Shown in pieces: positions 20,060-61,067 of a stretch of 64,000 nucleotides of DNA. Where the stretch lies: sequence record NC_047995.1. One strand, written 5' to 3'. Made by a program: the position numbers and the translations under genes. Each line of letters opens with the position of its first letter. Position 1 is the stretch's first letter. The notes under the pieces are model-generated. The model was not told the origin of the DNA. It searched no databases and was given only the letters and a program-made list of their open reading frames with translations.

Positions 20060-20806
20060 TTACATTCGAAGCTCGGCAGCAGTACGTTCGCCTTTCTTGG
20101 CGGCAGCGGCAATCTGCGCATCAGTTGCGTCTTTGGTAGACAGCAATTTGATGACGTTTTGAATAGAGCGCAATTCACCGAGATGAATTTGAACTTTCTT
20201 GACTCGCTTCAAATGATCGCCGATGAAGGTCATCAACCAACCTTTCTGCTGCATAACAACCGCGACTTCCAGTTTCTTGTACTTAAACGAGAACTGTTTG
20301 TCGGTAGCATGGAGAAACTCTCCAGCGCCAGCCACAGGTTCAACAGCACGAATGAACTCAGGTGCGTAGTCACGAGCACTTTGACGGCGCAAGGAAGAGA
20401 ACGCAGGTGAGAATGTAGTTGTTGAAGCTACAGGCTTAGCGGTCTTACTTGCGCGTACGGGCTTTCCCGCTGTGGCGTTCGCAGCTTCAGGCTTGACCTT
20501 AATAGCACGAAGCGCGTTGATGGTGGCCACCAGCGTCTTCGCCTTATACAGGTTCTTGATCGCAGTGACAGCGCTCTTGCCCGCAGCTTTCTTGGCGAAG
20601 GCCGTAGTCGCGTCAGTATCGCGCAGGATATCGAGAATGGTTTCGAGCTTAGACGTGTCCAGCTCTTTGATCTTCACCAGTTCGTCGATGCGCTTGATCA
20701 GCACTTTGGCGTTCTTGCCAAAGAGGATATCAGCGTTAGCAACCTGCGCCTTTGTAGCAGCGGAGATTGACACCACTGAACCGCTGTTCATTGTCATATC
20801 GTACAT
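20060..20806 (-). CDS. Basic Lys/Ala-rich hypothetical protein with an N-terminal VSISA motif
   Basis: AAGGA RBS; K/A-rich; VVSISAATK near the N-terminus. Confidence 0.75.
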   Translation of the reverse strand: MYDMTMNSGSVVSISAATKAQVANADILFGKNAKVLIKRIDELVKIKELDTSKLETILDILRDTDATTAFAKKAAGKSAVTAIKNLYKAKTLVATINALRAIKVKPEAANATAGKPVRASKTAKPVASTTTFSPAFSSLRRQSARDYAPEFIRAVEPVAGAGEFLHATDKQFSFKYKKLEVAVVMQQKGWLMTFIGDHLKRVKKVQIHLGELRSIQNVIKLLSTKDATDAQIAAAAKKGERTAAELRM

Positions 20807-20815
20807 AGCAGTTCC

Positions 20816-21361
20816 TTATCGCTTTTTGGTCCAGTTGGAGTTGTGCTTACCTTGAGCAGGCGCGGTGTTTTCTTCCGTGAGTTCTTCGCTCTCAACGTCG
20901 TTTTCTTCCTCGTCAACGACTGGCGCAGGCTTTGGTTCTTCTACCTGCGTGTTAAGAACGGTAGCAATCAGTGGTGCTTGCTGTATAGTGTTTACAGTAG
21001 CAACAGGCTCCTGCGCAGCGACCACACGCGCTTTGGCAACTTCACCGACAGCGTGTTCGTGGATAAGGTCAACCGTAATCAGATTGCCTTTCTCTGCGAG
21101 GATAGCATCAGCGCGAGGCTGGTCCCATTGATCCCAGAGAATGTCCAGACCTTTGTGCATGTAGTTCATACCCTTCGGCAGCTTACCGCGACCGTTGAAA
21201 GGCAGACCGTTTGAAGGAGTAGCTGGCTCGAACTCGTCCATCATCTCCCACTTACGTTTCGCTTCGATACACTTCGGGCCCCAGACGCCATCGCACTGTC
21301 CGTCATACAGACCGAGCATTGTCATGATCAACTGGAGCTTTTGATAGAATGCACTGAGCAT
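20816..21361 (-). CDS. Peptidoglycan-binding (PGBD-like) domain protein
   Basis: YQKLQLIMTMLGLYDGQCDGVWGPKCIEAKRKWE matches the PG_binding_1 pattern; low-complexity acidic tail. Confidence 0.7.
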   Translation of the reverse strand: MLSAFYQKLQLIMTMLGLYDGQCDGVWGPKCIEAKRKWEMMDEFEPATPSNGLPFNGRGKLPKGMNYMHKGLDILWDQWDQPRADAILAEKGNLITVDLIHEHAVGEVAKARVVAAQEPVATVNTIQQAPLIATVLNTQVEEPKPAPVVDEEENDVESEELTEENTAPAQGKHNSNWTKKR

Positions 21362-21377
21362 ACATAGTCCTCTTAAT

Positions 21378-21402: not shown

Positions 21403-21404
21403 AA

Positions 21405-24400: not shown

Positions 24401-27254
24401 CAACGTTGAACGTACCAGTCTGCAAGAAGCTCAGGCCGACAATGTAGAGCGTATTACGAGGAGCCTGTTGGATCACATCGTACATACGGTCTTCGCCCCA
24501 CGTGTTAACTGTGTCAGCAGTGATAGGCACTGCGTTCCAGCCGTCGACAATTTTGTGGAGGTCGTCACACCAGTTCGCTACGAGGTTAGACGGGCAGATG
24601 ATCAGAGGACGAATCGTTTCTTCGCCGAGGTCATCCAGCTCTTTAATCAGAGCAGCAACGTCAGACAGACCGATGATTGTCTTACCACCACCAGGCGCGA
24701 TGAAGATAGTCGCAAAGCGTGGACGCCGACGCAACGTTTTGTGCGCTTCAACCTGATGTGGAAGTAACGCGGCACCGTCACGTAAACCAGGGATACGGAT
24801 ATCGTCAATCGTGATACCGCTATCTGGTTTCAGTTTCTCAATCTCCACCTCAGCCTGTTCGAAATATTCGAGCGACTTAGGAATCACTTCGCTATACAGC
24901 GCGGCGAATGGAAGAATGATCTGTTGCAGACGGTCAGAGCCCGGTGCAGTGTCGCTGTCAATCAGAGAGCTGAACAGTTTCTTACGGTCAGACTTGGTGA
25001 TCGCGTTAGTCAGTTCACGGTACACCGCACCCCCGAAGTAGTTGTTCAGGCGTGCCATGTCAGCCAGCTTAGACGATTCACCCATCACGAAGTAGTGAGT
25101 GTGGGACGGCAGCGATTCGGTAGCGGCCTGAATGCTTCCCATCTCATTGAGAGAGGTCGTAATCAGGTTAGAGCCACGCAGACCAGCAGCATCGTTCAGC
25201 ACCCGCAGCATGATACGCAGCACTGTCATCGCAGGACGTTCGTCAGAGATCTCAGGAACCGTGAAGTCGTTCTCAATCAGGTTCTGATACAGGTTCTGGT
25301 CCATCGGGCTTTCTGCCAACGAAGCATTCTCTGCGTCCATGCCGACTGCGACACGCGCTTGCTGAATCAGAGTTTTCAGGTCAGGAACTTGTTTGTTCCG
25401 GAGCATGAACTCATACGTCTGACAGGTAGACGCGATGATCTGAATCAGTTCGTGGATGTTGGAGCCTTCGGTGCTGTTATACTTGATGGTGCTCTCAGAC
25501 ACAGCCTCCACCAGACGACCCGCACCAGATTCTGCTTTCGCCGCTTCAATCATCATGTCGTTTGATGTGCGATACGCAGCCATCATACCAGACGATTGAT
25601 TGTGATGGATGTTACCAATCACGTTAGCGACTGAACGGAAGTTAGGCGCTTCACCAGGCTCTGCGAAGTCGTAGCCCAGTGAGTCAGCGACGTCCAGAGC
25701 GTTCGGTGACTTCATACCGACAGTACGCGTTTCTTTAACGTCAAGGCCGCCGCCATTGGAGGTGTTCACGATCAGCGCGAAGTCAGGGTCGATACCGATA
25801 CACACGTTGCTAAAACGGTTAAGGGTCTTAGCCTTAGTCTGCACGTCACGGTCGAAGTCCAGATTACCGTTCTGAATAGCGAACATGTTGGTACGCAGGG
25901 TGTCGTGGTCAGTAGACAGCGGCACGCCTTTCTGGAACAGGTCATCGAGAACGTTGTTGAGCGTGGCTTCGTATGTCTTAACCATCTCAATGTCGATATC
26001 TTCACGACGAGGCAGCACAGCCAGAGTACCGTTCGGCATGATCGTCAGACCATTGTCGTCGGCAACAACGTCGTTAACCACGTAACCAAACTTCTCACGG
26101 AGTTTCTTCAACTCAGGCAGAGTGGTTGCAGAGGTAACGTAACGCGGGATACGCGCAGCACGGGTAATACCCGTACGAGTCGAACCAGCAACGCGGAAGT
26201 AGTAGCTCGCCCAACCCTGGAACCAACGATACAGACACATGGTCTGCGTGTCAGCGCCCTGACTGATGTACTCTACCATTTCCTTTTCGAAGTTAACGAT
26301 CAGGCCGCCTTCAACACGAATGTCGGTTGCGAGTGCGACTGCGTTAAAATCGACAGGCGTATCAGGACTGATCTTCATCGCCTGAATCTTGCGATCAATC
26401 ATCTGCTTGCCTGGGATAGGACGAATACCGATCGTCATGAAATCGCCCAGTGCTTCGGCAGTACCTTTGTCCAGATTACGGAACAGGTCGATATCAATGC
26501 CAGTCATTGCTGGGTGGATAGAACGCAGTGCCGCGTTATATACAGACCAGTCTTTGTCGAGAGGGATGCGAACCATCTTCGTATCAAACGCGTTGGAGTT
26601 GGTGCGCTCCACGCCGAAGATATCTTTGTACAGCGTCTTCGCAATGCGAATAGCAGCCTGCGCGATCTCAGAACTGTAGGTCTGGAGATTAGCACGTTCG
26701 AAATGCGCATCGTTGTCTACACGAGGACGGTCGCTACCCTGGTTGTTCAGAACGTTGAAGTTACCGTTCGAAGCCAGTGGGCTGGTAGGACATGGTGTGC
26801 CAGACATGATGATATCACGGCCGCCTGGGAAGCGCGTACTGTTTTCAATGATAGCACCAGACGACGCGGACAGATGCTCGGCCAGAGAACTCTTAATCTC
26901 ACGGCTCAGCTTGTCGCCATTCAGCGTCATGTTGATACGCATCACCGACAGGTCGATGTTCGCCTTAACACGCTTGGTGAAGTCTTCTGGTGCGACCTCC
27001 AGCATGTCTTCGAACTCTGCACCGTTAACAACGATGTAGTTGATCAGGTCGAATGCGGCATAGATACGAGCGACGGTTGATGCAGTGAACACAGCGAGAG
27101 TTTCGTAGTTGCGACGAGACTTCCCTGTGGCATACATCTTCGACATTTTTCCGTCGAACTCGGGCGGCAACGTTTTAACAGCAAGAGCCTGATTGAAGGT
27201 ATCGGCGATCTGCTGCGTGGCGGTTGCTGAGGTACTGATCATTTGATTCATCAT
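21405..27254 (-). CDS. Very large SNF2/SF2 helicase-domain protein (1949 aa)
   Basis: LLPHQVEA, APGGGKT, LLDESH, ATGT, ISEGHNMQ and DTPWSPGTYDQSTARIFR are SNF2 motifs; about 800 aa of unknown N-terminal sequence and an unknown C-terminal region. Confidence 0.85.
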   Translation of the reverse strand: MMNQMISTSATATQQIADTFNQALAVKTLPPEFDGKMSKMYATGKSRRNYETLAVFTASTVARIYAAFDLINYIVVNGAEFEDMLEVAPEDFTKRVKANIDLSVMRINMTLNGDKLSREIKSSLAEHLSASSGAIIENSTRFPGGRDIIMSGTPCPTSPLASNGNFNVLNNQGSDRPRVDNDAHFERANLQTYSSEIAQAAIRIAKTLYKDIFGVERTNSNAFDTKMVRIPLDKDWSVYNAALRSIHPAMTGIDIDLFRNLDKGTAEALGDFMTIGIRPIPGKQMIDRKIQAMKISPDTPVDFNAVALATDIRVEGGLIVNFEKEMVEYISQGADTQTMCLYRWFQGWASYYFRVAGSTRTGITRAARIPRYVTSATTLPELKKLREKFGYVVNDVVADDNGLTIMPNGTLAVLPRREDIDIEMVKTYEATLNNVLDDLFQKGVPLSTDHDTLRTNMFAIQNGNLDFDRDVQTKAKTLNRFSNVCIGIDPDFALIVNTSNGGGLDVKETRTVGMKSPNALDVADSLGYDFAEPGEAPNFRSVANVIGNIHHNQSSGMMAAYRTSNDMMIEAAKAESGAGRLVEAVSESTIKYNSTEGSNIHELIQIIASTCQTYEFMLRNKQVPDLKTLIQQARVAVGMDAENASLAESPMDQNLYQNLIENDFTVPEISDERPAMTVLRIMLRVLNDAAGLRGSNLITTSLNEMGSIQAATESLPSHTHYFVMGESSKLADMARLNNYFGGAVYRELTNAITKSDRKKLFSSLIDSDTAPGSDRLQQIILPFAALYSEVIPKSLEYFEQAEVEIEKLKPDSGITIDDIRIPGLRDGAALLPHQVEAHKTLRRRPRFATIFIAPGGGKTIIGLSDVAALIKELDDLGEETIRPLIICPSNLVANWCDDLHKIVDGWNAVPITADTVNTWGEDRMYDVIQQAPRNTLYIVGLSFLQTGTFNVDIGGVRVRIRGAVEFVNRFRFSYVLLDESHKVKNFSGGQQGSQVHFNTKAVFTAPSVRYARIATGTLVTDRVRDIVGQAALMTPAMFGDSLDVAYDGAKDDIEMIRRAHSRMANHTAFISFKRKHWAFMLPNPIDTFIQVEIDDPSVPNSALHQEVYNAMYAQVLEKLQEAANAAKRKASAGSDDDDEDAGGDGDNASDIDEDDIEEGDDLGALLATNGDLNMYFQRMEMMLTDPMGDDVARMTFEAAGVTNFTSAKVLTIIDRIKKHFEVQPERDQMVSEQQIFEWKPGVVPRELDIAVFNGQKYLARKQSEEFARQTLPPSMTPPPEDPDYWKPEVQGKLIVFTRYVRAANAIYNALPENYKKVAVVYHGEVGKLGQNKDANLDAFKTDNNVQILIANEQAISEGHNMQMGSRIIRCDTPWSPGTYDQSTARIFRPDVAAAKLDENGKPGDMAREVVFIDWVMTNKTLEVGKVARLMWKTLEKTRFDEKGNQRYEALDQFKLAPIKMSAKLLIDNNTLADFKDYFLAKKELNDIESQEFQEMRKTTIAAMQALPATPALNDFRVMEQTPFVANQKIPDRYGWGLERLLDWARNRNFTSGEGLKDSLNRAPVVTEYGNGVVVSVTVRTVDGKLRADSPISTVRVRLAGTGETVSFPASKVHIATKVDKSDLKKFFEVRKPWANEKDRKRATAEANRIEVEDTIADETQTADTVETEKKVEVQERKAARVKKRVENKEQGKPINEGVAEAAGRVRRRKPADLPVLDNTTRRKKPVAAALDDMGGADMALELTPTVYNGFVAIYANATDPDSKALKAFDFVEFGDYVYYDCAYYEDFEKLLDFIEIKKKLSFDKLSEKRLEFVLDFFDESTPRMGFNIKLALKSQEQLKQFFLVRHKAASDKKHVKAYPMVMEDRLRIMFDLNTNPQMKRFIGTKIPNTRKFGTFDSAPGMWIGFVKNVSGAKARINKIVKAGYNVTNIKKVTTALERLKLTTSKSKAV

Positions 27255-32931: not shown

Positions 32932-34220
32932 TACTTAACCGATTGCTTGAGCAAACGTTTCTGCGCTGGGTTCAGGCCCATGACCTCTGAGATTTCATCA
33001 ATCTTACGCAGAGTCAGGACACCCTTAGCAGTACCGCCAGAACCTGTCAGGCTGATCTTAACCAGTTCACGTCCGTTACGACCGTTGACGATCTGATGGA
33101 TAACGCTGTTCTTACCGCCACGCCCTGCGCGAAGTACGGTAGACGCCATGCCCAGGATTTCAGTGATAGCTTCTTTCTTCTCGGTAGGACTAAGGCCCGG
33201 TACCAGACGAACATACAGGCTATCGTTCTGCACACGCACGTTGTCGAAGATCTCTTTCTTACGACCGCGAATCATGTGCTGCGCATTACCCAGCTGAGTG
33301 GTGTCACGCAGGTTCTGAGTAGTACGGTTAATCGGTTTACGCTCGCTGTAGTTCAGGAAGCCGTCAACAGCCATAAGCTGGTTGATAGTACGCTTCATTT
33401 CTGGAGCAGTACCAATCAGACGACCCATAGGGAACGAGCCAGGAACTTTCTCATCCACCAGCGAAGTCAGGAAGTTTTCGCTGATACCAGAAGCAACCGC
33501 GATCGTGGTAGACAGCACCAGTGCGTAGTTCGGGTAATGCAGGCCGTCAGAGTTCACGAAGTTATCAATGAACACATAGGTCTGGAAGCAGATAGGGTCA
33601 GTACCAGAAGCGATGAAGGTACGTGTACGAATCTTCGAATAGTCTTCTTTATTCAGAATCTTCGACAGGTAGTTCGCAATCGTTGCGGCAAGTTTGGTGT
33701 GCTCTTTAGGCGCGCCATTCTTAACGTCGATGCTCATGAGGCGTACCAGTTTTTGCTGCTGGTCTTTAGCCTGCTCGATGACGCTCAACAGGGACTTAGC
33801 GGCTGCGTTCTGATCTTTGAATGCGCTGAAAGTCTTGCTGCTGAGAATCTGATAAGCAACGGACAGTTCACCAATCGCCTGAGACAGTTGGCTCACTTGA
33901 TTGTTGTACTGCGCTTTACTGCGGACGTCGGAGATATCAATCTTAGACAGGTCGATAACCTGATTCAGATCGATAGCCTTGGCCTGTTTACCTTTGATAG
34001 TACCTTCGAGGTCTGCGAGTTCAACCGCTTTAGGGCTAGCACTAACAGACAGGAGTTTCTTCGGGATAACGACCGAAGTGGCCTGAGAGATTACAGCGTC
34101 GAGCACGTTGCGGAACTCTTTCGCTGTACGCGCCTGACGTAATGCAGTCATATTCCCAGAGCCATAGTCAACAGATGCGCTGATGCTGCTAACTTCATTG
34201 TTTTTGGCAGTCTTAGCCAT
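32931..34220 (-). CDS. Hypothetical protein, probably virion-associated, with SISA/SVSA motifs
   Basis: GAGG RBS; upstream CTAATTT motif; EVSSISASVD and LLSVSASP. Confidence 0.7.
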   Translation of the reverse strand: MAKTAKNNEVSSISASVDYGSGNMTALRQARTAKEFRNVLDAVISQATSVVIPKKLLSVSASPKAVELADLEGTIKGKQAKAIDLNQVIDLSKIDISDVRSKAQYNNQVSQLSQAIGELSVAYQILSSKTFSAFKDQNAAAKSLLSVIEQAKDQQQKLVRLMSIDVKNGAPKEHTKLAATIANYLSKILNKEDYSKIRTRTFIASGTDPICFQTYVFIDNFVNSDGLHYPNYALVLSTTIAVASGISENFLTSLVDEKVPGSFPMGRLIGTAPEMKRTINQLMAVDGFLNYSERKPINRTTQNLRDTTQLGNAQHMIRGRKKEIFDNVRVQNDSLYVRLVPGLSPTEKKEAITEILGMASTVLRAGRGGKNSVIHQIVNGRNGRELVKISLTGSGGTAKGVLTLRKIDEISEVMGLNPAQKRLLKQSVK

Positions 34221-34332
34221 GATCATCCTCTACTGGGTCTAGTATTCATGTCGAGTAAAAATTAGCGACTAAGGGCCGTTTTGCCCGACATAGTTCTCGC
34301 ATAGACTTTACAAATTTTAGGCATTGGAATAC

Positions 34333-34392: not shown

Positions 34393-35058
34393 TTAAACAG
34401 TCACTTTACCTTTTTTCTTGGTCTTAGCAGCTTTCTTACCAGCCGCTTTCTGCGCCGCAGTACCAGTGTGCTTCACAGCCTTAGCAGTGGTTTCTTTACC
34501 ACCTTTCAGGCGCGGCATTGGTTTCAGCTTAGGCTTAACCAGAGTTACGGTTTTCGGCTGAACTTTTGGAGTTACCAGCTTACCGTCTTTGATGCCAGGC
34601 TTACGAGCTTTACGCGCGGCCAGACGAGCTTTCTGCTTCATGATCAGGTTTTTGTAGCTTGCTTTCTGCTTGGCAGCCAGGTTGCTTTTCGCAACGGATT
34701 GGCGACGCAGCAGCAGCTTACGTACGGTAGCCTGAGACTTGGCAGTGTTTTTCAGACCAGCCTGGTATTTAGCCAGACGCTCTTTCAGGCGCTGCTCGAT
34801 AGACTTCGCTTTACCTTTTGCTTTCTGCTTACGCAGGTGGGTAGAGCGCTCACCGTCGAATTTTTTCTCGGCGGCGGTTTTCTTTGCAGCAGCTTTCTTC
34901 GGCTTAGCAGCCTTAGGTGCAGCGGCTTTCTTCGGCTTAGCAGCCTTAGGTGCAGCAGCTTTTTTAGCAGCAGGCTTTTTGGTACCTTTTGCTTTCTTAG
35001 CTTTGGAACCGCCTTTAACCGGGTCGGTCGGGGAAGTCAGTTTACGTTGTACGGCCAT
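34393..35058 (-). CDS. Histone H1-like Lys/Ala/Pro-rich DNA-binding protein
   Basis: KKPAAKKAAAPKAAKPKKAAAPKAAKPKKAAAKK; very basic; GAGG RBS. Confidence 0.8.
   Translation of the reverse strand: MAVQRKLTSPTDPVKGGSKAKKAKGTKKPAAKKAAAPKAAKPKKAAAPKAAKPKKAAAKKTAAEKKFDGERSTHLRKQKAKGKAKSIEQRLKERLAKYQAGLKNTAKSQATVRKLLLRRQSVAKSNLAAKQKASYKNLIMKQKARLAARKARKPGIKDGKLVTPKVQPKTVTLVKPKLKPMPRLKGGKETTAKAVKHTGTAAQKAAGKKAAKTKKKGKVTV
34892..34956. repeat. 33-bp-period tandem duplication encoding KKAAAPKAAKP twice
   Basis: gctttcttcggcttagcagccttaggtgcagc at 34892 and again at 34925. Confidence 0.9.
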
Positions 35059-36320: not shown

Positions 36321-38210
36321 TTATTTCTTGGCTTTCATCTTCGCCCTGTAGGCTTTAGCGTCGGCGCGCATCTCGTCAACCTGTTCCAGAGCTTCCTGCA
36401 TGCCTAGCTCAAGAGCACGGTTAATGATAGCCTGTCTGATCACCTCAGGAGATTGCTGAGAGTCAACAAGCAAGTAGATAGCAGAGCGAGACATGTTAGA
36501 AGAATCAGGATAGAGTTCTTCCGCAGCCTGCTGGAGCATATCATCGCCCATGACCTTGTAGCGCAGCTTGGCTCGTTCCGATGCAGTCAGCTTCGGCTTA
36601 GTCAAGTTCGCTAAAGCCTCTTTCATCTTAGGATTGAAGTCTTCTCGGTCGTCGAGAGATATGACCTTTTCACCTTCGAATACGCGAGTCGCCACGCGAT
36701 AGTAAGAGCCTGTCAGCATGTCCTTGTGTCGGCGCAAACTTTCGAGTGTCGCAGCAGGGCACTTTGGGTTCTGTGCAGCAAGTGATGCAATGGCCGGCGT
36801 CAACACGTAGTCACGATAGGAGCTACTGTTTTCTTCGCCGAACTCCTCGTCCACGTACTGGGTCTGTGTACGAGCCGAGTTGATACGACACGCGTTGTAC
36901 CAGAACATCTGCTCGGGGTTCTTGGAGTACTTGGCGAAAGACCAAATCTCAGACAGAGCGGCAGGGAATGCACCGTTAACAATAGCGCTTTGCGTATCAC
37001 GATACAGGTCCATTTCACCGAGATTCGCATCAAGGAAACTATCGCGCTGGGCATTCGGTATAGCGTCAATAAACATCGAGAGCGCTTGTGGTTTTCCTGA
37101 CAGATACTCCCACACTTTGGACATAACGGCATCGTCAAGCACGAAGTTTTTGAACAGCACATCAAAGAAACGACGAAGTTCAGTGAAGTGTCCGCCTGCC
37201 ACCAGTTCCGCAGTACATCGTTGATAGAAACGAGGCTGTCCCCATTTCTTCTGCGCCAGCATAGTAGCAATCTGAGGATGACGTTCCATGTACTGGAGAG
37301 CGGAGTCTTCTGCGTCTTTGGACTTAGTAGTCACCAGACGCTCAACGAAACCATTCACGTCATTACGCAGCATAGGACCTTCAACGTCATAGTCGAATGT
37401 GTCATGGCGTTGGTCGACGTACAGCTTGCTGCCCAGTTCGAACACGCCTTTGCGTTCTGTGGTTGCGATGAATGGATTGATTTGTTCGTTCAACCAATCT
37501 TGCAGCGTGTGGACGAAAGGCATCTTAGAATCTGGATATGCGAACTCAACCAGATACAGCGCATTCACTTTCTCTGAGCCTACGAAGCGTTCAGAGGCTT
37601 TCGCTTTCTGGCGCTGGAAGAATGGCTTAGCGAGGCAACGTGCGATAGGCTTGTTGATGTTCTTATCCTGAGGTTCAATCAGATAAGCAATCAGCGTACC
37701 ACCAGCAATGTCCTGCTTAACGTACTTCTTGTTTGAACCTGTTTTCAAGTTCATGCAGCTCACCCAACCACGATCGGTACTCATGCCTGCGATATCATAC
37801 GGGTGCATGGAGATACAGATCAGCTGGTGGTTGCGCGTTGCGTTGACGAGTGACTTACGCTTAGGGTCGGAGTCAAACATCTTCTTGAGGTCAGGGTCCT
37901 TCGCAAGGTACTTACCGATCTTAACGATACGACCATGCGAGTCCTTGCCTGTGCCAGCAACGTAGTCCACCAGCACGATGTTCTTTTCCATAAGAGCATC
38001 AACGATCTCAACAGGCGCTACAACACCTTGCGTGACGTTCTTGATCACTGCGTCGGTCTTGGCGTCGATGTAAATGCGCATCGCCTTGTGACCTTTCTTG
38101 CCGCTAATCTTTTCAAACAGCTTGAGCAGCGTAGGATTGGGCTTCCATCCCTTTCTGTATTTGCGATACATTGAAGGAGGCAGAGCCGATAAGCTAACCA
38201 TTAATTCCAT
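36321..38210 (-). CDS. Hypothetical protein (629 aa) with an N-terminal VSLSA motif
   Basis: MELMVSLSALP start; ISMHPYDIAGMSTDRGWVSCM block; helical-repeat-like C-terminus; upstream CTAATTT. Confidence 0.75.
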   Translation of the reverse strand: MELMVSLSALPPSMYRKYRKGWKPNPTLLKLFEKISGKKGHKAMRIYIDAKTDAVIKNVTQGVVAPVEIVDALMEKNIVLVDYVAGTGKDSHGRIVKIGKYLAKDPDLKKMFDSDPKRKSLVNATRNHQLICISMHPYDIAGMSTDRGWVSCMNLKTGSNKKYVKQDIAGGTLIAYLIEPQDKNINKPIARCLAKPFFQRQKAKASERFVGSEKVNALYLVEFAYPDSKMPFVHTLQDWLNEQINPFIATTERKGVFELGSKLYVDQRHDTFDYDVEGPMLRNDVNGFVERLVTTKSKDAEDSALQYMERHPQIATMLAQKKWGQPRFYQRCTAELVAGGHFTELRRFFDVLFKNFVLDDAVMSKVWEYLSGKPQALSMFIDAIPNAQRDSFLDANLGEMDLYRDTQSAIVNGAFPAALSEIWSFAKYSKNPEQMFWYNACRINSARTQTQYVDEEFGEENSSSYRDYVLTPAIASLAAQNPKCPAATLESLRRHKDMLTGSYYRVATRVFEGEKVISLDDREDFNPKMKEALANLTKPKLTASERAKLRYKVMGDDMLQQAAEELYPDSSNMSRSAIYLLVDSQQSPEVIRQAIINRALELGMQEALEQVDEMRADAKAYRAKMKAKK

Positions 38211-38241: not shown

Positions 38242-38248
38242 AAATTAG
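38242..38248 (-). promoter_or_regulatory. Class B motif CTAATTT
   Basis: CGCTAATTTT context, about 32 nt upstream of the ATG, downstream of a terminator. Confidence 0.55.
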
Positions 38249-42073: not shown

Positions 42074-42697
42074 TTAAGGACGAGGCATACGTTTCTTAGG
42101 AGGAACGGTACGCTTCTTGCCCTGGACCTCAGACGCCATCTTGCGACGTTTCGTTTTAGCAGCAATCACTTCAGGCTTAACGCCGTTTGCTGCGGCCACT
42201 TCTGCCCACTTAACAAACTTAGGCTTCATGAACTTCGTACCACCACGAACGCTATAAGTACCGATAGCGTTTTTAGAGATAGCTTTCAGGTCGAGAGCTT
42301 TTACGTCAGCAGAAGTGAAAGGCAGAACGATACTGGACAGGCCTGCGTTCGCATTCATTTCGTCACGAGCGCGAGTCATGAAGTTCAGCGCACTGCTTTT
42401 CAGCATAGCCACTTTGGCCTTAGCAACGTCGTACTTAGCTTTATAGCTTTTACGTGCGTCACTACCTTTTGCCATACCTTCCAGCTTCGTTTTCATCGCA
42501 GGCAGTTTCTGGGCCTGAGAGATATGAGAGGTGATATACTTCTTCGCGCTACGCAAGCATTTGGTTGCTTCTTCGAAGTTGCCACTTACGCGCTTACTCA
42601 CCAGAAGCTGAGTGCCTTTAACCGCATACATTGCATCTTCTTTCTTTGCGGACACGGACTCTACTGCTCCTGCCAGATTGATTTTAATGAGAGCCAT
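42074..42697 (-). CDS. Basic Lys/Ala-rich protein, paralogue of 43215..43946
   Basis: MALIKINL...ESVSAKK; KFMKPKF matches GYIKPKF in the paralogue. Confidence 0.75.
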   Translation of the reverse strand: MALIKINLAGAVESVSAKKEDAMYAVKGTQLLVSKRVSGNFEEATKCLRSAKKYITSHISQAQKLPAMKTKLEGMAKGSDARKSYKAKYDVAKAKVAMLKSSALNFMTRARDEMNANAGLSSIVLPFTSADVKALDLKAISKNAIGTYSVRGGTKFMKPKFVKWAEVAAANGVKPEVIAAKTKRRKMASEVQGKKRTVPPKKRMPRP

Positions 42698-42701
42698 CTA
42701 T

Positions 42702-43211
42702 TTAATCCTTAATCATTTTGACGCGCGTGTGGTCGAAAATACCGAACGTAGGCACATCGTGGTTATCGCCTTCATTTCCTTTAATGGAGTCATATCCGGC
42801 GAGGCGTAAGATCTTGCTAATCTCGGTGTACTCGTCCCACCACATGTAGACACGCTTGTGTTTACTTGCAGGAATGAGCTGGTTGAGTTTATCAAGGCGG
42901 GAGACTAATGTTAGAGCTTCGTCGCGGCCAACACGCTTATCCTGAAACGCTTCCATGATAAGTTTTTTGACCCGACTATGAATCTCAGCGAACTTGACCT
43001 CAGTCCAGAGAGAACGAAAGTTCAGGCTGGCATAGCGTCCAGGGTCCGCGTGAAATTTGTAGAGGCGCCCATCCTCTGCATACAATTCAGCGTACTCACG
43101 ATCTGGTGTTACCCAAGTCATGTGTTGCTTCTTCGCATGTTCATCGTTCCAGTCTTCTGCAAGACCACGATAGTAGATTTTGGGCGCACTCAGGCTGACG
43201 AAGACCTGCAA
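42702..43211 (-). CDS. Putative ADP-ribosyltransferase-fold protein (ART-PolyVal-like) with a VSLSA leader
   Basis: YYRG...WVTPDREYAELYA..G.LY...AGYDSI...FGIFDHTRVK pattern. Confidence 0.5.
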   Translation of the reverse strand: MQVFVSLSAPKIYYRGLAEDWNDEHAKKQHMTWVTPDREYAELYAEDGRLYKFHADPGRYASLNFRSLWTEVKFAEIHSRVKKLIMEAFQDKRVGRDEALTLVSRLDKLNQLIPASKHKRVYMWWDEYTEISKILRLAGYDSIKGNEGDNHDVPTFGIFDHTRVKMIKD

Positions 43212-43214
43212 CTG

Positions 43215-43946
43215 TTATTTGCCCAGGCGTTTGGCCGACAGTTGAGCTCCATCGGATTTTTTCCCAGATGCGCGTGGTCCACGCAGAGCTTTCTCTGGTA
43301 CTTTGTCTAAAGGCGACTCATTCATGCCCTGCTGCGCCTTAGACTTCTTGGCGTTCTGAACACGCTTAACAGCAGCACGAGGTCCACTACCCTTAGGTTT
43401 GGCTGTAGACACTTTCTGGCCAAGCGCCTCGAACTTAGAAGCAGCCAGGAACTTAGGCTTGATGTAACCTTTACGCCCCGTCACAACCAGAGAATCAACC
43501 TGCGCCGCAGTCACTGTGCGTAGGTATCTGCCCGGGGTGTCTGCGAGAGAAATATCGGTTGCTTTCAGCGGAGAAGACAGAGAACTCAAACCAGCGGCGC
43601 GCATCGCAGCTTTACCTTCACGCAGCAGAGACTTGGCCTCTTTTGCATTAGCAGAAGATCGAGCTTTCAGAGATTTTATCTGATCACGCAATTTGGCTTT
43701 ACGCGTAGGGTTTTCTTCTTTCTTAACTTTAGTTGTCAGTGAGATCAGTGAGATACGATCTTTCAGTGCGGACGTTGCCAGCTTTTTGGCCTTACGTGCG
43801 TTAGTGATGCACTTGCCGACAGCGGCTTTGTGTGCGCTGTTGATAACCAGAGCCTGAGCGCCGCCAACTTTGGCAACTTTATATCCTGGTGCTTTGGCTG
43901 ATTCGGACAGTACCGAATCACCCAGACTGATTTTAATGAGAGCCAT
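43215..43946 (-). CDS. Basic Lys/Ala-rich protein, paralogue of 42074..42697
   Basis: MALIKISL...LSESAKA; AAGGA RBS. Confidence 0.75.
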   Translation of the reverse strand: MALIKISLGDSVLSESAKAPGYKVAKVGGAQALVINSAHKAAVGKCITNARKAKKLATSALKDRISLISLTTKVKKEENPTRKAKLRDQIKSLKARSSANAKEAKSLLREGKAAMRAAGLSSLSSPLKATDISLADTPGRYLRTVTAAQVDSLVVTGRKGYIKPKFLAASKFEALGQKVSTAKPKGSGPRAAVKRVQNAKKSKAQQGMNESPLDKVPEKALRGPRASGKKSDGAQLSAKRLGK

Positions 43947-43956
43947 TTATTGTTCC

Positions 43957-44562
43957 TTACACCAGCGCTCGGCCGGGCAGATCAAAGTTTTTACCTGCGG
44001 AGTAATCACCCAGCGCACGGTATAGGGAGTCGCGCAGCATTTGCTCGATGATATCCGAGTTGTGTGCTGAGGCGTCTTTGAAAGCAACCTCGATTGATTC
44101 AGTTCTCGGATTCACTACTGCATAACGCAGCGGGCTGATTGTCTGTGTGTTACACCACGCATCGATCTTGGGTTGCAAGTCTGGCGTTAGTGGAATGCGG
44201 AAATCAGCGAGAGAAAACACCACACTCTGAATTGGAGGTGGGGACGATTGCGACATGTACTTGCCGTTAGGACTCAAGCGTTCCATGGCCATCGAGGCTT
44301 CGAAGATCGACTGATACCCTTCGCTTACGGTCGTGATATTGTTGAGCTTGAAGCTATGCGTTGTAAGACCTTTGCGAATCAGTTTGGCGACTTTCAGATC
44401 ATAATCACCTGAGTCATCCTGTGCAAAGGTAACCAGCGCGTAGTAGGAGAACCCAGAGTCTTCGCGTAGCAGACGATGATCCAATACACGAAAGCCCACG
44501 ACACTTTGCAGTGCCTGGGCTGTGATCTGAATTCCCTTAGCTAAGGAAACAAAGATTTCCAT
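43957..44562 (-). CDS. Hypothetical protein with an MEIFVSL leader
   Basis: TAATG coupling; first 7 residues identical to 51847..52383. Confidence 0.7.
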   Translation of the reverse strand: MEIFVSLAKGIQITAQALQSVVGFRVLDHRLLREDSGFSYYALVTFAQDDSGDYDLKVAKLIRKGLTTHSFKLNNITTVSEGYQSIFEASMAMERLSPNGKYMSQSSPPPIQSVVFSLADFRIPLTPDLQPKIDAWCNTQTISPLRYAVVNPRTESIEVAFKDASAHNSDIIEQMLRDSLYRALGDYSAGKNFDLPGRALV

Positions 44563-44900
44563 TAACGCAGGGTTTTCAACGCCTGTCTAGCTTTCGCCAA
44601 ATCGGAGAAGTATTTAGCTTCGTCATCGAACTCAGGCTCCATGCGGATTTCGATGCCAGATACGTTGAAGCCTATATCTTCATCTTCATCCTTGGTGACC
44701 ATACCAAAGCGAGCGACACCGTTCTTGTAGCTGATGAAACGGAAGTCGATGATATCTTCGGGACCAGAGAGGTCAGACGGCATACCATCATCCAGCAGAT
44801 CGAAGAACTCTTTCTTCGACAGGCCAGTGAACACGCTCGCCATTGCGTTGGCGGAAGTGGATTTGACAGCTTCGTCCAGATTCAGTTTGATTAGACACAT
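44562..44900 (-). CDS. Acidic hypothetical protein with an MCLIKLNL...STSA leader (112 aa)
   Basis: Start moved to 44900 (GGAG RBS). Confidence 0.7.
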   Translation of the reverse strand: MCLIKLNLDEAVKSTSANAMASVFTGLSKKEFFDLLDDGMPSDLSGPEDIIDFRFISYKNGVARFGMVTKDEDEDIGFNVSGIEIRMEPEFDDEAKYFSDLAKARQALKTLR

Positions 44901-50967: not shown

Positions 50968-50996
50968 AAAAAGAAGGGCCACCGTTAGGCAGCCCC
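50968..50996 (-). terminator. Rho-independent terminator, TAAC loop
   Basis: Minus strand GGGGCTGCC-TAAC-GGTGGCCCT then TCTTTTT. Confidence 0.75.
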
Positions 50997-51269
50997 TGCG
51001 AATACTTTACGCACCCCATTATCCAGATAGTGGTCTGCATAGAAAGGTCCGTTTTCATTTTCAATACCAATACGACGACAGAGCTGTCTACGCAAGCGCT
51101 TGGGCCACACCATCTCGTCATCCAGCAGATGGATAACAGCAGGCATAGCTTCAAGCTGAGTCATTGTCAGATCGCGAATCTTATCGTCAATCCTACACAA
51201 CTCTGCATAGTCCTGTTCAGGCGTAGGCACGTTGCGTTCAGGTTTCGAAAGGTCAACAGTGAGTTCCAT
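50985..51269 (-). CDS. Hypothetical protein (94 aa)
   Basis: TGATG coupling; GGAG RBS. Confidence 0.65.
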   Translation of the reverse strand: MELTVDLSKPERNVPTPEQDYAELCRIDDKIRDLTMTQLEAMPAVIHLLDDEMVWPKRLRRQLCRRIGIENENGPFYADHYLDNGVRKVFAGAA

Positions 51270-51715
51270 CAGTATCTCCGAGGCTTCTTGATCTTCTTAA
51301 TCGTGGACTTAGGACGCTTGATTGCTCGCAGTGCCTTACGCGCTTCGATAATCTTTTTGGACAAGTCAGAGCGTTGTGCCTTGACTGCATCCGTGTCCTG
51401 CTCAGTGCCTTTGAGTTTCTCAAGGCGATTCCACTCTCTAACCAAACGATCAACGACGTTAGCCCTAGACACACGCTGCTGGTTGGTGCGCACAATGTCC
51501 TGCTGCGTCTTCACCGAGATGCGCGTTGCATCGACTTCGGCGCGGGCGGACTTCACGCCTTTCGTATCACCGTCGGACTGCTTCTCGTTCAGCTTTTTAC
51601 GTGCTAACTGCGAACGGCGTTGAGCACCTTTGAGATCATCTTTCGAGTTCTCCAAAGATACTTTGGTGTCTTCAAGTGGGCTGGTTCGCACACTCAAACT
51701 AATGAGTATTTTCAT
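51269..51715 (-). CDS. Basic coiled-coil protein with an ISLS leader (148 aa)
   Basis: Start moved to MKILISLS (51715, GAGG RBS). Confidence 0.7.
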   Translation of the reverse strand: MKILISLSVRTSPLEDTKVSLENSKDDLKGAQRRSQLARKKLNEKQSDGDTKGVKSARAEVDATRISVKTQQDIVRTNQQRVSRANVVDRLVREWNRLEKLKGTEQDTDAVKAQRSDLSKKIIEARKALRAIKRPKSTIKKIKKPRRY

Positions 51716-51846: not shown

Positions 51847-52383
51847 TCATGCGGATTGAAGTTGAAGTAATTCTTCGTCTTCGATATCCGCGCCAGACCA
51901 CGAACGAATCACGGATGCGTTACCACGATTGCCCGTCAGCATTGACTTAACTGCTGGACGTGCTTCGCGTTCTGCATAGTGGTCGATAAGAGCTTTGTCA
52001 TTAGCGAACCACAGAATGGAGTGACCACCTTTAGGGCAGATCAGGAATTGCGCAGGACGCTGGGGAACGTTCAGCGTCATATAAAAGTCACCAGCGCCGT
52101 TGGGACTCATCATCGGCATTGGCTTCATGAACTGCAAGAAGTCGTTTGAATCTTTAAGACGCACATCTCCCAGCAACCAGACGGCACCCTCTTCACCTTC
52201 ACGCACCGCACTCAGTGGGCCTTTACGTGTTGTGATTGAACCAAAAACATCTTGGTCGAAGCGGGCAAGACCGAAGATAAGCGATGCGAGTTTCTTCAGG
52301 TCAGGCGTGGTACATGGACTGTCGATTTTAGCCATGCCCTCGGACCCTACTGTAATCTTCGATAATGATACAAAGATTTCCAT
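51847..52383 (-). CDS. Hypothetical protein with an MEIFVSLS leader
   Basis: Upstream CTAATTT motif; 178-aa ORF. Confidence 0.7.
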   Translation of the reverse strand: MEIFVSLSKITVGSEGMAKIDSPCTTPDLKKLASLIFGLARFDQDVFGSITTRKGPLSAVREGEEGAVWLLGDVRLKDSNDFLQFMKPMPMMSPNGAGDFYMTLNVPQRPAQFLICPKGGHSILWFANDKALIDHYAEREARPAVKSMLTGNRGNASVIRSWSGADIEDEELLQLQSA

Positions 52384-54121: not shown

Positions 54122-54169
54122 CTATTCTCCTGCAATTAAATTCTCGTTGCTCTGAATTAGTTTTACAGA

Positions 54170-54590
54170 TTACTGGAGTAGTCACAAAAGAATAAAGTCA
54201 GACAAATCTTAAACTCCAATAGGGACTCGTTGGAATTCCTATTGGAGTTCACCCTCTCACCGATGACGGTCGGCAGAAGGTGTTCTCCCCGTGCTTTTCG
54301 AATGCGCCAGCACGGTAGCGCTCGCGGTCTTACGCTCTTTTGTTTGCAGCGCGGTGGCAGCAGGTAGCAGGGTACGCGCAGCAAAGAGCAGCCGCTATCG
54401 GCCATTAGCGATAACGCGGTGTTACGCTTAACGGCCTAGGGTGACTCTGGCCGAGTCTGTACAAAAAAGAGTTCGGCCTATCCCCAATTCGGCAAAAGAA
54501 ACAGGCCGAACTAAACAGTCAACGCAAACTCCGTATGCGCTGTTTTGTACTGTAACAAATTAGAAACATCTCGCAATATTCAGACAATTC
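54170..54590. other. Structured non-coding region (ncRNA or origin candidate)
   Basis: No credible CDS; 12-bp perfect inverted repeat at 54212-54223/54238-54249; 10-bp inverted repeat AGTTCGGCCT/AGGCCGAACT; further nested helices. Confidence 0.45.
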
Positions 54591-57837: not shown

Positions 57838-57847
57838 ACGTTATTCC

Positions 57848-58345: not shown

Positions 58346-59919
58346 TCTGCGTCCTCTAAAAATGTAAGGTGGTCGGAGAATTGCTTCTTAAGGAATAACG
58401 CACCGTCAGAATGAACCGAGTCACCGACCGTTTCCATTAAAGCGCCATCATGTTCCAGAGAATAAACATGCTTCACCTGCGTGTCATCCACGATAAGACG
58501 GAACAGACACTCAGACTCTATGCCGCTGAAAATGTGGTTGAGCACCTTTCGTCTGCGACGTTCTGATATTCTTGCTTTCTTGAGATCGTACTTAACGCCA
58601 GACTTGCACGTTAAAGTTTTTTCGCCATGTTTTGTCTCGCGGACCGAGTCAATATAAATATCGGTCAATGATTTAAGCGCTACGCTCAGTGGCAGCGCGT
58701 TGTTATTCCATTTACGCAAGAAGTCGAACACCTTCCGGAACTCTATGTGATTGGTAAGTTCCTGGAAGACACGACTCTTATACGATATGGCAAGTTGTCC
58801 CATTGAAAAGAGCGTGGCATAGAAACAAATCTTGGTCGCAGCTTTTGGCAAATCATTCCTGTGTGCGATATCGTCAACGGAGGTTACGTCGTCCATAAAC
58901 GAACAATGAATCCCGTGTGTTTCGAGTTCACGCAACAGAATGTTGAGCTGGCTGCTGGACATATCCCAGTTAGTACCTATCGCACTGCACTCCTGTTTAA
59001 GTTCAGCAGGGAATGACTGGAAGCCACCACCCTTCTCAAACAATCGTCCACCAATCTTCGCCAGACGGTAGACAGGCATGTAGCGAATAGTCAGAGGATG
59101 CTCACGCACAATCTGCACAGGTCCGCTCAGGATAGATTGAAGACTCGACAGCACATGATGGTACTGCCCCTGTGATCGCTGCGACTTCATATACGACTTA
59201 TGCTCAAGGTAAGCCAGAATGGGATCGATTAGAATTTCATTCGGAGCCAACTTGTTGAGCACGGACGTATAGAGTTTCTTCGCTTCACGGTCCCTGTTAG
59301 AACATAGCGCGGTGAGATCGTGTCGAGGCCATTTGAACGGCTTCTTCACTGCCTCCTCCAGCATGTCCTTAATCGTCTGACCATATTGTTCATTGACCAA
59401 ACGCAGGGGACTGTACAAGCGAGTTACCGACAACAGGTCTTTGCTTGTCTGCGGATTCTCAGGGTACATGCAGCCTAACACTCCCGGTTTTATGCGGAAG
59501 CGACGGCACACACCAGCCTTACCTACTTTGAATATGTGGCTTTTGTATTCGAGAACATTTTCGAGCAACCAATCAAGGGCTCTGCTAAAATGCTGATCTG
59601 TTTTTGCAAAGTTAGGCGATACAGGTCCGCCCCTTTGAGATTTTACCCCGAACACCATAGGCAACACTTTACGCCCGAACGTTGAAGGGAAAGGTGTCCA
59701 AACCTCACCGAACTTAGCGTTACGCTGTTTGCTCTTTGTTGGCGTATAGATTGACAATTGAAGCACATGCCAGAAGAACAGATTTATCTGGCGTCTGTAC
59801 TCCGCTTCGAATTTCTTAGGCCCATCGTAAGGACAGGCATAAACTACGTGGTGCTGAACCCATTGTATCGGAAACATCTCTTGATACGTGGGATTCTTGA
59901 CTAAATACGGAGAAGCCAT
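58342..59919 (-). CDS. Divergent superfamily-A polymerase palm protein (TV-Pol-like, possible primase/polymerase)
   Basis: Ordered motifs GGRLFEKGGGFQSFP, WDMSSSQLNIL, KAATKICFYATLF, NHIFSGIESECL and LEHDGAL parallel the PolA motifs; no exonuclease domain. Confidence 0.6.
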   Translation of the reverse strand: MASPYLVKNPTYQEMFPIQWVQHHVVYACPYDGPKKFEAEYRRQINLFFWHVLQLSIYTPTKSKQRNAKFGEVWTPFPSTFGRKVLPMVFGVKSQRGGPVSPNFAKTDQHFSRALDWLLENVLEYKSHIFKVGKAGVCRRFRIKPGVLGCMYPENPQTSKDLLSVTRLYSPLRLVNEQYGQTIKDMLEEAVKKPFKWPRHDLTALCSNRDREAKKLYTSVLNKLAPNEILIDPILAYLEHKSYMKSQRSQGQYHHVLSSLQSILSGPVQIVREHPLTIRYMPVYRLAKIGGRLFEKGGGFQSFPAELKQECSAIGTNWDMSSSQLNILLRELETHGIHCSFMDDVTSVDDIAHRNDLPKAATKICFYATLFSMGQLAISYKSRVFQELTNHIEFRKVFDFLRKWNNNALPLSVALKSLTDIYIDSVRETKHGEKTLTCKSGVKYDLKKARISERRRRKVLNHIFSGIESECLFRLIVDDTQVKHVYSLEHDGALMETVGDSVHSDGALFLKKQFSDHLTFLEDAE

Positions 59920-60416
59920 TGCATACTCCAGAAAAAGTGCTTCTTGCTCTTGTTTTTTACAGTTTTAGGTGCTTTCGACCATTTTCTTTTGCTTTAGGTA
60001 CAAAACAGAGTCACATCTAACCCGTATTCAACCCATACACACCTCTACAGGGCCATCCGCCCCTCCCAACCAGGGGACCTGCTCACCGCAACAGCTAACT
60101 CATAGCTTCGCTGGGCAACTAGCAGCTAGGCGGGCTGGGATAGCGGGTAGATAGCGCTAGATTCATCAAGGACAATAGGGCTTTAATGGGTATCCGGAGT
60201 AGCAATTTAGCGCCTTCGTAGATCGCCGTATGAAGCTCCACGCGTATAGGGATTACGCCGTAGATGCCTTAAAAGCGAAAAGTCTTAGGCTGAATTTGGG
60301 TCAAAAATACCATGTAACTTTTTTTCGAAAACTCGCACTCAACTGTAGATTAGAGATGAATTTTATGAAAAACAGAGGAAAACCCGAATAAAATCAAGGA
60401 CTTTCCTCCGCGATCA
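59920..60416. other. About 500 bp non-coding region (origin or ncRNA candidate)
   Basis: No credible CDS; a C-rich block (about 60015-60090) is followed by a G-rich block (about 60120-60195), then an AT-rich tail. Confidence 0.35.
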
Positions 60417-61067
60417 TCACTTTTTCTGCGAAACACGCTTCCCGAGCTTAACTCCAATCTGCGTCAGAATGCGTTTCACTGTTTCACCGTCGTGTTCTTC
60501 CATTGCAGCGCCTAAACGCTCGCCCTGTTCACGCGATAGCTCCGGCATAATCATTTTCAGCATCATAGAGCGCTGTTTGGCTGCTTTAGACTTGCCTTTC
60601 GATACAGACACGCCATCATTCGCTGCTAACGCGCTGCTAATCGCCTTTTGCACACGACGATTGCCGAAGATATCGCCGAATATGTCACCGAACAGGTCTT
60701 TGAACGACATACCGCCGCTCATGATATCGTTCTTGGTGAAACGCACAGGCTGTCCAAGCGCGTTCGTGCTATGCGTCGATTCAACCTGATTCGTTGTACG
60801 CCCACCAGCACGGAAGTTCTCGTCAGGACGTGACGCTTTGCCTTCTGCACCTGGCTTAGTGTTGCCGTTGCGTAAATCAGGGTCACCTTCAACAGCCTTA
60901 TCAGGGTCGAACATATCGTCCGCTGTTTCGCTCTGGTTAGGGTCGAAGGGAATCTTGCCTGTCAGCTTATTCGGGTCAGGCCAGCTATCAGGAATGTCTG
61001 ACGCTGGTTGTGGCTTATTGGTCATATCGCCGTTCGCTTCGCTGTTCAGGCTGATTTTGACTTTCAT
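60417..61067 (-). CDS. Hypothetical protein with a Pro/Asp-rich N-terminal half and a KISL leader
   Basis: AGGAG RBS; MKVKISLNSEA. Confidence 0.7.
   Translation of the reverse strand: MKVKISLNSEANGDMTNKPQPASDIPDSWPDPNKLTGKIPFDPNQSETADDMFDPDKAVEGDPDLRNGNTKPGAEGKASRPDENFRAGGRTTNQVESTHSTNALGQPVRFTKNDIMSGGMSFKDLFGDIFGDIFGNRRVQKAISSALAANDGVSVSKGKSKAAKQRSMMLKMIMPELSREQGERLGAAMEEHDGETVKRILTQIGVKLGKRVSQKK

Follow-up and report, generated by a model that had tools for sequence, protein, structure and literature searches.

Leader-Bearing Genes in the Alexandra Window

The stretch of DNA analyzed in this study (64,000 nucleotides, hereafter the window) matches at 100% identity bases 124001-188000 of Erwinia phage vB_EamM_Alexandra (NC_047995.1; 266,532 bp), one of the "Lupandier" jumbo myoviruses, which also include PaBG, Lu11, NCTB, the Dickeya phages JA/AD1, and the Erwinia phages Y3 and Yoloswag (PMC7412058). 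The subject is a short N-terminal leader, ending in an S-x-S motif, that is common to a set of Alexandra proteins. A sequence-only reading of the window had noted S-x-S-A at the start of about twelve open reading frames (ORFs) and proposed it as the packaging and/or protease site of proteins loaded into the phage head. The 12 N-termini quoted there were all verified as real in the translated genes, with gp178 annotated from the second Met (MNQMISTSA instead of MMNQMISTSA) and gp197 starting at a TTG codon. As nearly all the window genes lie on the minus strand, the coordinates by which that reading designated them are the low, stop-codon ends, and the leaders are found at the high-coordinate ends. 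Coordinates below are those of the window unless another genome is named; the leaders and their genes, the CTAATTT copies, the MQY paralogues and the unannotated ORF described below are on the minus strand. A slash marks the predicted cut position.

The short form of the leader can be written M-x-h-x-h-S-x-S, h being a hydrophobic residue. It begins gp189 (MELMVSLS/A, 38187..38210; gene 36321-38210, 629 aa), gp197 (MQVFVSLS/A, 43188..43211; gene 42702-43211, 169 aa), whose predicted fold is weakly ADP-ribosyltransferase (ART)-like, gp199 (MEIFVSLA/K, 44539..44562; gene 43957-44562), gp212 (MEIFVSLS/K, 52360..52383; gene 51847-52383), gp211 (MKILISLS/V, 51692..51715; gene 51269-51715) and gp178 (MNQMISTS/A, 27228..27251; gene 21405-27251), a 1948-aa SNF2-type helicase of 215 kDa with Pfam matches to SNF2-rel_dom and Helicase_C. 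Similar leaders are found in orthologues. The gp212 leader is kept in Y3, and that of gp211 reads MKILISLS/A in Y3, MEILISLS/Q in Yoloswag and MQVLISLS/K in JA11. Counterparts of gp199 start MKIFVSLA/A in Y3 and MEKVVSLS/A in a Yoloswag fusion protein, and the gp178 orthologues start MINISTS/A (Y3), MLISTS/K (Yoloswag), MQIFSTS/A (JA11) or contain ..LNSLS/A (PaBG).

The long form consists of M-A-L-I-K-I-N-L, a spacer and h-S-x-S, and is carried by gp196 (MALIKINLAGAVESVS/A, 42650..42697; gene 42074-42697; basic, isoelectric point (pI) 10.4), gp198 (MALIKISLGDSVLSES/A, 43899..43946; gene 43215-43946; basic, pI 10.7) and gp200 (MCLIKLNLDEAVKSTS/A, 44853..44900; gene 44562-44900). Within the cassette gp200-gp196 (42074-44900), long-leader and short-leader genes alternate. 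The basic protein gp176 begins with ..SGSVVSIS/A (20762..20806; gene 20060-20806), and its orthologues in Yoloswag (MPLINLNLNTGVASTS/A) and Y3 (MSLIKLGNLDGDVVESTS/A) have full long leaders; like gp196 and gp198, it is rich in Lys and Ala. The leader of gp186 (MAKTAKNNEVSSIS/A, 34179..34220; gene 32931-34220, adjoining the head-tail connector gene) corresponds to ..VINSIS/T in Yoloswag and ..EVSSIS/T in Y3.

Two further proteins appear to have weak variants of the motif. The first, gp223 (MKVKISLN/S, 61044..61067; gene 60417-61067), has Asn at the second small position, as does its Y3 counterpart (MRVMISLN/S), and its membership is uncertain. The second, gp210 (MELTVDLS/K, 51246..51269; gene 50985-51269), was not in the list of the sequence-only reading, and its Yoloswag orthologue starts MEIVISFS/A. 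Outside the window, leaders were found on gp078, gp122 (a Nudix protein), gp135, gp151, gp234, gp243 and gp252, bringing the tagged set to about 20 proteins genome-wide, 11-13 of them within the window. The gene of gp243 (Alexandra 198087-198452) is probably misannotated at its start, as translation from a Met within the ORF gives the canonical leader MEMIVSLS/H.

The Motif Is Enriched at the N-Termini of Unrelated Proteins

Enrichment was determined on a rebuilt set of the 345 annotated Alexandra proteins, with expected counts derived from the rest of the proteome. The pattern S.SA occurs 60 times genome-wide, and 18 of these occurrences start in residues 1-21, where 3.9 are expected (Poisson P=1.7e-7). 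Within the window, nine N-terminal S.SA were counted against 0.81 expected (P=2e-7). The short-form pattern [ILVM].[ILV]S[LIT][SA] was found 8 times against 0.56 expected, a 14-fold excess. None of the control patterns (A.AA, T.TA, S.SG, and A.SA) was enriched at N-termini, and none of 2000 local shuffles of residues 2-60 gave the observed motif count. The N-terminal motif is thus far above chance by counts, shuffles and control patterns. Conservation extends upstream of the S-x-S, with M-[EKQ]-[IVL]-x-[VIL] in the short leaders and MALIKINL common to Alexandra, Yoloswag, Y3 and PaBG. Both Ser codon families (AGY and TCN) are used in the leaders, with codons varying from one leader to the next, which places the selection at the amino-acid level.

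The carriers are, as had been claimed, mostly unrelated to each other. All-versus-all blastp found no similarity past the leader, except between the paralogues gp196 and gp198 (E=2e-11) and for gp176 and gp252, probable paralogues that match a single Yoloswag protein. The shortest carrier has 94 aa and the longest 1948, and pI values span 4.5 to 10.7. Scans of the carriers against Pfam, PHROGs and NCBIfam gave no functional match other than SNF2/Helicase_C in gp178 and NUDIX in gp122.

Comparisons between relatives and structural models indicate that the leader is a module and not part of a fold. In gp122, the Pfam NUDIX domain begins at residue 20, behind the leader, and the leaderless PaBG homologue has the aligned "RKQSG" as its very start. 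The Yoloswag orthologue of gp212 also has no leader, with a stop codon upstream. In the AlphaFold model of gp197, the predicted local distance difference test (pLDDT) is 89 overall but below 50 for residues 1-7, and the first strand spans residues 12-16. Foldseek matches of this model were weak, mostly to ART-fold domains and every one with E>0.2. Pfam and NCBIfam scans of gp197 gave no match, and a homologue search returned only close relatives. The family conserves Y-[RH]-G, Y40..Y44 and E147, to be compared with the ART signature [H/R]-[Y/S]-E, and gp197 is possibly ART-like.

A single 545-aa ORF of Yoloswag (locus L008, 15443-17080) combines the counterparts of gp199 and gp198 and has a long leader within it: the gp198 leader aligns with MSLIRLTIPGQELVSES/AKAP at residues 219-236. 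This fusion could reflect a polyprotein-like arrangement or a nested start.

A Switch from Ser to Ala between Lineages

The S-x-S of Alexandra is not used by all members of the clade: the Erwinia and Dickeya relatives have h-S-x-S, and in the Pseudomonas relatives (Lu11, HRDY3 and PaBG) protein families shared with them carry h-A-x-A instead. In Lu11, at least 13 neighboring genes, the gp189 orthologue among them, start MKIQLAVA, MKIQLATA or MKIMLAVA; leaders of HRDY3 read MEMMLALA or MELQLALA, and those of PaBG ..EAVAA, ..IAMA and ..NSLSA. Yoloswag, Y3 and JA11 share the h-S-x-S form with Alexandra. By counts at N-termini, h-S-x-S is enriched in Alexandra (27 versus 8.7 expected) and Yoloswag (8 versus 0.9), where h-A-x-A is not, and the reverse holds in Lu11 (h-A-x-A 21 versus 5.0), HRDY3 (18 versus 3.3) and PaBG (16 versus 6.1). 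Orthologues that are 63-66% identical in their mature parts differ at the small residues of the leader. In a 150-aa family of Lu11, for example, MKIQLAVA/TAKVYYHGT stands against MEIRLSLS/ADVYYHGT with 63% identity in the mature part, and a third form is MEMMLALA/SVQ..LLYHGT. Composition was considered as the cause of the switch and rejected, as Alexandra equals Lu11 both in GC content (0.50) and in Ser/Ala frequencies. One uncultured S-type phage exceeds Lu11 in GC.

A protease-based search of IMG/VR (61 loci) uncovered more leader dialects, such as MKIKVFVSES/A and MKIQLSLS/A, and mixed S/A types. The conserved core is h-[S/A]-x-[S/A], and the residue after the predicted cut is variable (A, K, V, Q, H, S, G or N). 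The proposal that S-x-S-A is the packaging or protease site of this phage group is supported, with the corrections that S-x-S is limited to the enterobacterial branch and that cleavage probably precedes the Ala.

The Same Motif in Head Proteins and a Candidate Protease

The motif was sought in the major capsid protein, the portal and the prohead protease, as the sequence-only reading had suggested, and each contains a form of it that matches the lineage. In the capsid protein it lies in the linker between a conserved N-terminal domain and the HK97-type body. This linker reads VHSTS/A in Alexandra, where VHSTSANA resembles the VKSTSANA of the gp200 leader; HSHS, HSVS, HSQS, QSTS or VSES in other S-type phages; and VATA, IATA or MATA in Lu11-type and EAVAAA in PaBG among the A-type phages. 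Contigs with mixed leaders have SALS or SAVAS. The portal N-terminus reads FASQS/AGG in Alexandra, LATA/AGN in Lu11 and LATA/ASGG in HRDY3. At the protease N-terminus, the motif precedes a conserved Phe (RSES/FD, PSHS/FD, SKS/FD, SRS/FA), and in one A-type contig the protease has MATA/FN and the capsid protein QMATA/SS.

The candidate prohead protease of Alexandra is gp145, whose gene lies close to those of gp143 and the capsid protein gp141, all outside the window. Residues His124 and Ser181 are invariant in gp145. Its AlphaFold model (pLDDT 81) has a disordered N-terminus of 19 residues, and the top three Foldseek matches in the PDB are all T4 gp21 (5JBL), the only specific match and a weak one (E=0.04, probability 0.80, TM 0.34/0.48). 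By sequence, a search of gp145 against the PDB gave spurious zinc-finger matches only. The other annotated "peptidase," gp218, which is in the window, was considered as a paralogue of the protease and discarded, being unrelated to the prohead protease family. The protein gp143 (Alexandra 105484-107514), annotated as an "ATPase," contains four S.SA sites (P=5e-4). It is extremely acidic and repetitive, is encoded between the protease and capsid genes, and looks like a scaffold protein.

Alignment with T4-Type Leaders and Evidence from PaBG Virions

The proteases of T4, phiKZ, 201phi2-1 and SPN3US all cut after Glu; in T4, a capsid-targeting sequence (CTS) is present on all head-internal proteins, and Alt is trimmed at ITE-6 (PMC5694885). 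A search of IMG/VR with the N-terminal domain of gp189 returned 76 loci with the family core A-L-[KP]-P-S-x-Y-R. In Lupandier-type contigs, this core is preceded by MEIxVSLS, MINISTS, MKRIRVNLESIS or MRIQLAVA, and in many others, including Agrobacterium phage Atu_ph07, by MKLAELLE, MRIQELVE, MKIKQITE or MQYTDLIE. The gp189 orthologues thus start with MEIxVSLS/ALPPS in the Erwinia and Dickeya phages, MRIQLAVA/AVP in Lu11 and h-x-E/ALKPS in T4-like phages. Alignment with the h-x-E leaders places the predicted cut in Alexandra after residue 8 (VSLS/A). This agrees with the T4 precedent invoked in the sequence-only reading, homologues of a carrier having a T4-type leader at the aligned position. 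The rule of cleavage after Glu, (L/I)-x-E, would not hold in the Lupandier phages, which have Ser or Ala at the aligned P1 position in leaders and head-protein sites alike.

In the T4-like contigs, genes beside the gp189 homologue have similar leaders. Neighbors in IMG/VR contigs L054, L036, L084 and L089 (Atu_ph07) have N-termini of the type MK..F..YLE or ..L.E, and some of these leaders are on ART-like "xYHG[ST]" proteins. From their sequences, these neighbors look like a homologous cargo set with T4-style CTS.

Analysis of PaBG virions by sodium dodecyl sulfate-polyacrylamide gel electrophoresis and matrix-assisted laser desorption/ionization identified 14 proteins, among them the 221-kDa helicase-like gp202; the capsid protein lost about 20% of its mass on maturation, and several virion proteins gave multiple processing products (PMC7412058). 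With 29% identity to gp178 over 1,850 residues, PaBG gp202 is its orthologue and has NSLS/A at the N-terminus. A second PaBG virion protein, gp83 (PMC7412058), begins with the long leader MLIKINLLEAVAA/KA. For the capsid protein (368 residues), a mass loss of this size would be consistent with cleavage around residues 78-80. The GenBank record of Y3 carries no marks for proteins detected by mass spectrometry.

The claim that no replication enzyme carries the motif is only partly true. One carrier, gp178, has the annotation "DNA helicase," and by its orthology it is likely a virion protein. Topoisomerase I is tagged in Lu11, HRDY3 and probably PaBG, and LigT is tagged in relatives. Within the library of papers that was searched, neither the leader strings nor a CTS in the Lupandier clade was found.

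A Proposed Capsid-Targeting Propeptide

We favor a model, with a probability of about 0.72, in which the leader is a capsid-targeting propeptide, the counterpart in the Lupandier clade of the T4 CTS, and the protease cuts after Ser or Ala. The leader would dock the protein on the scaffold/protease core during prohead assembly. The putative prohead protease gp145, with its possible distant gp21/assemblin-type fold, would then cut the leader off after the second small residue (VSLS/A). It would cleave at the same site the portal, the acidic scaffold-like gp143, its own N-terminus and the major capsid protein, the last at about residue 68. The tagged proteins, such as gp176, gp196, gp198, gp178, gp197, gp189 and gp122, would stay in the head, and a part of them would probably accompany the DNA into the host. 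The motif, its enrichment and modularity, the switch between lineages and the recurrence in head proteins are observed; cleavage and its position, packaging and ejection are inferred from them.

Several points weigh against this model. The virion data consist of 14 Coomassie-visible bands, all of PaBG. The link between gp145 and gp21 is weak (E=0.04, TM 0.34/0.48), and gp145 has no Pfam match. The covariation of linkers and leaders comes from few independent lineages and is marginal (Fisher P=0.045, unique linkers), mixed S/A lineages exist, and the capsid-protein site moves by a few residues between lineages. Both gp223 and gp210 depart from the motif, and several carriers are enzymes without obvious packaging purpose (Nudix; topoisomerase I and LigT in relatives).

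The alternative that survives best, itself improbable, is that the tag serves a system outside the head (a host factor, degradation, or a second peptidase, gp218 for instance) and that the likeness to the head sites is coincidental. One could indeed argue that some carriers are metabolic or nucleic-acid enzymes and that the window encodes a second annotated "peptidase." However, gp218 does not belong to the prohead protease family, and the motif covaries at the capsid linker, the portal N-terminus and the protease N-terminus. The S versus A split also corresponds roughly with the host genus. Against this alternative, uncultured contigs have S-type leaders at high GC as well as mixed types. The alignment with T4-type h-x-E leaders and the presence of two leader-type proteins in PaBG virions further disfavor a role unconnected with the head.

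It is a shade less probable that the leader is a cleavage site only, with no targeting role, and that packaging depends on other features. This would account for the conserved core of the motif being the cut site, but the conserved upstream residues exceed the need of a 4-residue protease site, and a protease confined to the prohead reaches only proteins that are already inside.

We consider it very unlikely that the carriers are diverged paralogues and that the shared start is the first beta-strand of a common fold. The alternating hydrophobic/small pattern is strand-like, gp196 and gp198 are true paralogues, and gp176 and gp252 match the same Yoloswag protein. The other carriers do not form a single paralogous family, because blastp found no similarity past the leader, the leader is disordered outside the fold in the gp197 model and it precedes the NUDIX domain boundary in gp122. 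The spread of lengths and pI values, the existence of orthologues with and without the leader, and the joint switch of all carriers from Ser to Ala between lineages argue in the same direction.

A Sec/lipoprotein-type signal peptide, suggested by the resemblance of small-x-small to the A-x-A site of signal peptidase I, or a nucleotide-level element over the start codon (promoter, ribosome-binding site, or translation ramp), suggested by the DNA motif shared upstream of leader genes, can be dismissed as scarcely credible: leaders of 8-16 residues (only 8 in the short form) have no hydrophobic core of 10-15 residues, the longest apolar/small run is 3-11 in carriers versus 17-19 in the genuine signal peptides of gp300 and gp074, the variation of Ser codons rules out a nucleotide repeat or promoter, and the upstream motif lies 24-69 nt before the start, outside the leader.

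The capsid-targeting model is proposed for the Lupandier clade and is not extended to Mieseafarmvirus (RSL1-type phages). In the latter, the linker of the major capsid protein showed no clear match to that group's different leader. Small proteins near the head genes of Ralstonia phage RSL1 (ORF120, 123, 124, 127, and 133) have a recurring N-terminus, M..I[ST]AA..RL..[ST]EV.AG, which may be that clade's own leader.

Expression Context and Neighboring Genes

The sequence-only reading had placed most leader genes downstream of the motif CTAATTT, directly or within an operon, and our analysis agrees with this placement. The window contains 11 copies, all on the gene strand, and of 23 copies in the whole genome, 18 are followed at a distance of 24-69 nt by a start on the same strand. 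The copy at 38242..38248 is upstream of gp189; the others start at 34259, 35127, 45501, 46443, 52420, 54557, 62206, 30642, 11809 and 15244, with distances of 39 nt to gp186 and 37 nt to gp212. Among the genes that follow the motif are six leader genes, with the endolysin operon gp201-gp196 and, for the tail, gp113, gp117 (PAAR) and gp137. CTAATTT is often found within GCTAATTT. It is probably a late promoter element, and its sharing with tail and lysis genes agrees with a putative late co-expression of the leader genes.

Several genes among or near the leader genes have no leader. The paralogues gp190 (38286-39155), gp192 (39693-40559), gp194 (40975-41826) and gp202 (45510-46394) all start with MQY and have no S-x-S (blastp between gp194 and gp202, E=1e-10); their counterparts in Y3 and Yoloswag start with MQF or MQL. 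Among the cargo genes are also gp193 (40599-40964), whose orthologues in Yoloswag, Y3 and JA11 are annotated DUF2778, and gp191 (39157-39675), annotated "GTP-binding domain," which begins MEKISFTGHRPQYLGG. Between SbcD and gp186 lies gp187 (34393-35058), a strongly basic protein whose repeats are rich in Lys, Ala and Pro; the gene has a CTAATTT of its own. At the position matching gp187, PaBG encodes the virion protein gp191 (35 kDa), the match being positional only. The CTAATTT at 54557 is followed after about 150 nt by an unannotated ORF of 80 aa with an ATG start (54163-54405), located where a gap separates gp214 from gp215.

Comparison with Known Systems

The closest known system is the CTS of T4 with its gp21-cleaved propeptides (IPI-III, Alt, gp67, and gp68), likewise an N-terminal peptide of about 6-20 residues that is found on unrelated proteins and ends in a protease site, here a predicted one. 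In both cases, the same site is present in the capsid protein and the scaffold, and basic internal proteins are part of the cargo; T4 adds an ADP-ribosyltransferase, to which the possibly ART-like gp197 may be compared. The differences are in P1, which is Glu in T4 as opposed to Ser (Erwinia/Dickeya) or Ala (Pseudomonas branch) at P1 and P3 here; in the protease, gp145 being at most a remote structural relative of gp21; in the additional, longer leader class (MALIKINL...); and in the tagged set, which is larger, contains more enzymes and is known here from sequence and predicted structures. The Lupandier system would thus act like the T4 CTS/propeptide but departs from the Glu specificity that defines it.

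The jumbo myoviruses phiKZ, 201phi2-1 and SPN3US likewise make many of their head and ejection proteins with N-terminal propeptides, which are cut at a short motif, and paralogous head proteins of phiKZ-type phages have identical N-termini (PMC5694885). Their protease (MEROPS S80; S/A/G-x-E or A-x-E) cuts after Glu, however, whereas the Lupandier leaders have no Glu, and the Lupandier phages belong to another clade with no reported virion RNA polymerase or inner body.

Cleavage after a small residue is found in the gp21 fold superfamily with the herpesvirus assemblin. Its sites, (V/L)-x-A/S, are cut after Ala and have a hydrophobic P3 or P4. They are, unlike the leaders, C-terminal scaffold sites and not on N-terminal cargo, and the resemblance is in fold superfamily and cut site. 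Encapsulin cargo-loading peptides similarly send unrelated enzymes into an HK97-fold shell, but they are usually C-terminal and uncleaved, and no protease is involved. For gp178, a parallel is found in phage P1, where DarB, a large helicase/methylase, is packaged in the head through a hierarchy of Dar proteins. Like PaBG gp202 and, by extension, presumably Alexandra gp178, DarB is a very large virion protein with a helicase domain; packaging of the Dar proteins does not depend on a common N-terminal tag, and the comparison with gp178 is one of size, domain and place in the virion.

Implications for Lupandier Phages

A wider proposal, which we hold to be evenly balanced between true and false, is that the whole clade (PaBG, Lu11, Y3, Yoloswag, Alexandra and many uncultured relatives) re-tuned a gp21-type protease so that small residues took the place of Glu in its P1 and P3 preference, with sub-lineages using Ser, Ala or both, and that all the substrates, about 20 leaders together with the capsid protein, portal, scaffold and protease, co-evolved with it. 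An 8-residue tag would then define, from sequence alone, a packaged and probably injected arsenal including the SNF2 helicase, ART-like proteins, a Nudix hydrolase, topoisomerase I and LigT.

Some annotations would be corrected in consequence, namely, the start of gp243, the "ATPase" label of gp143 and the "DNA helicase" label of gp178, a likely virion protein. If the model is true, the leader could help to package proteins of choice in large capsids, a use already made of the T4 CTS. It would also reveal a prohead protease lineage with non-Glu specificity, in which the switches from Ser to Ala suit studies of protease-substrate co-evolution. The tag would give, for a little-studied clade, a list of packaged, possibly injected proteins, most of the approximately 20 per genome being now "hypothetical." As Lupandier phages are biocontrol candidates for fire blight and soft rot, the set of proteins they may inject into their hosts would be of practical value.

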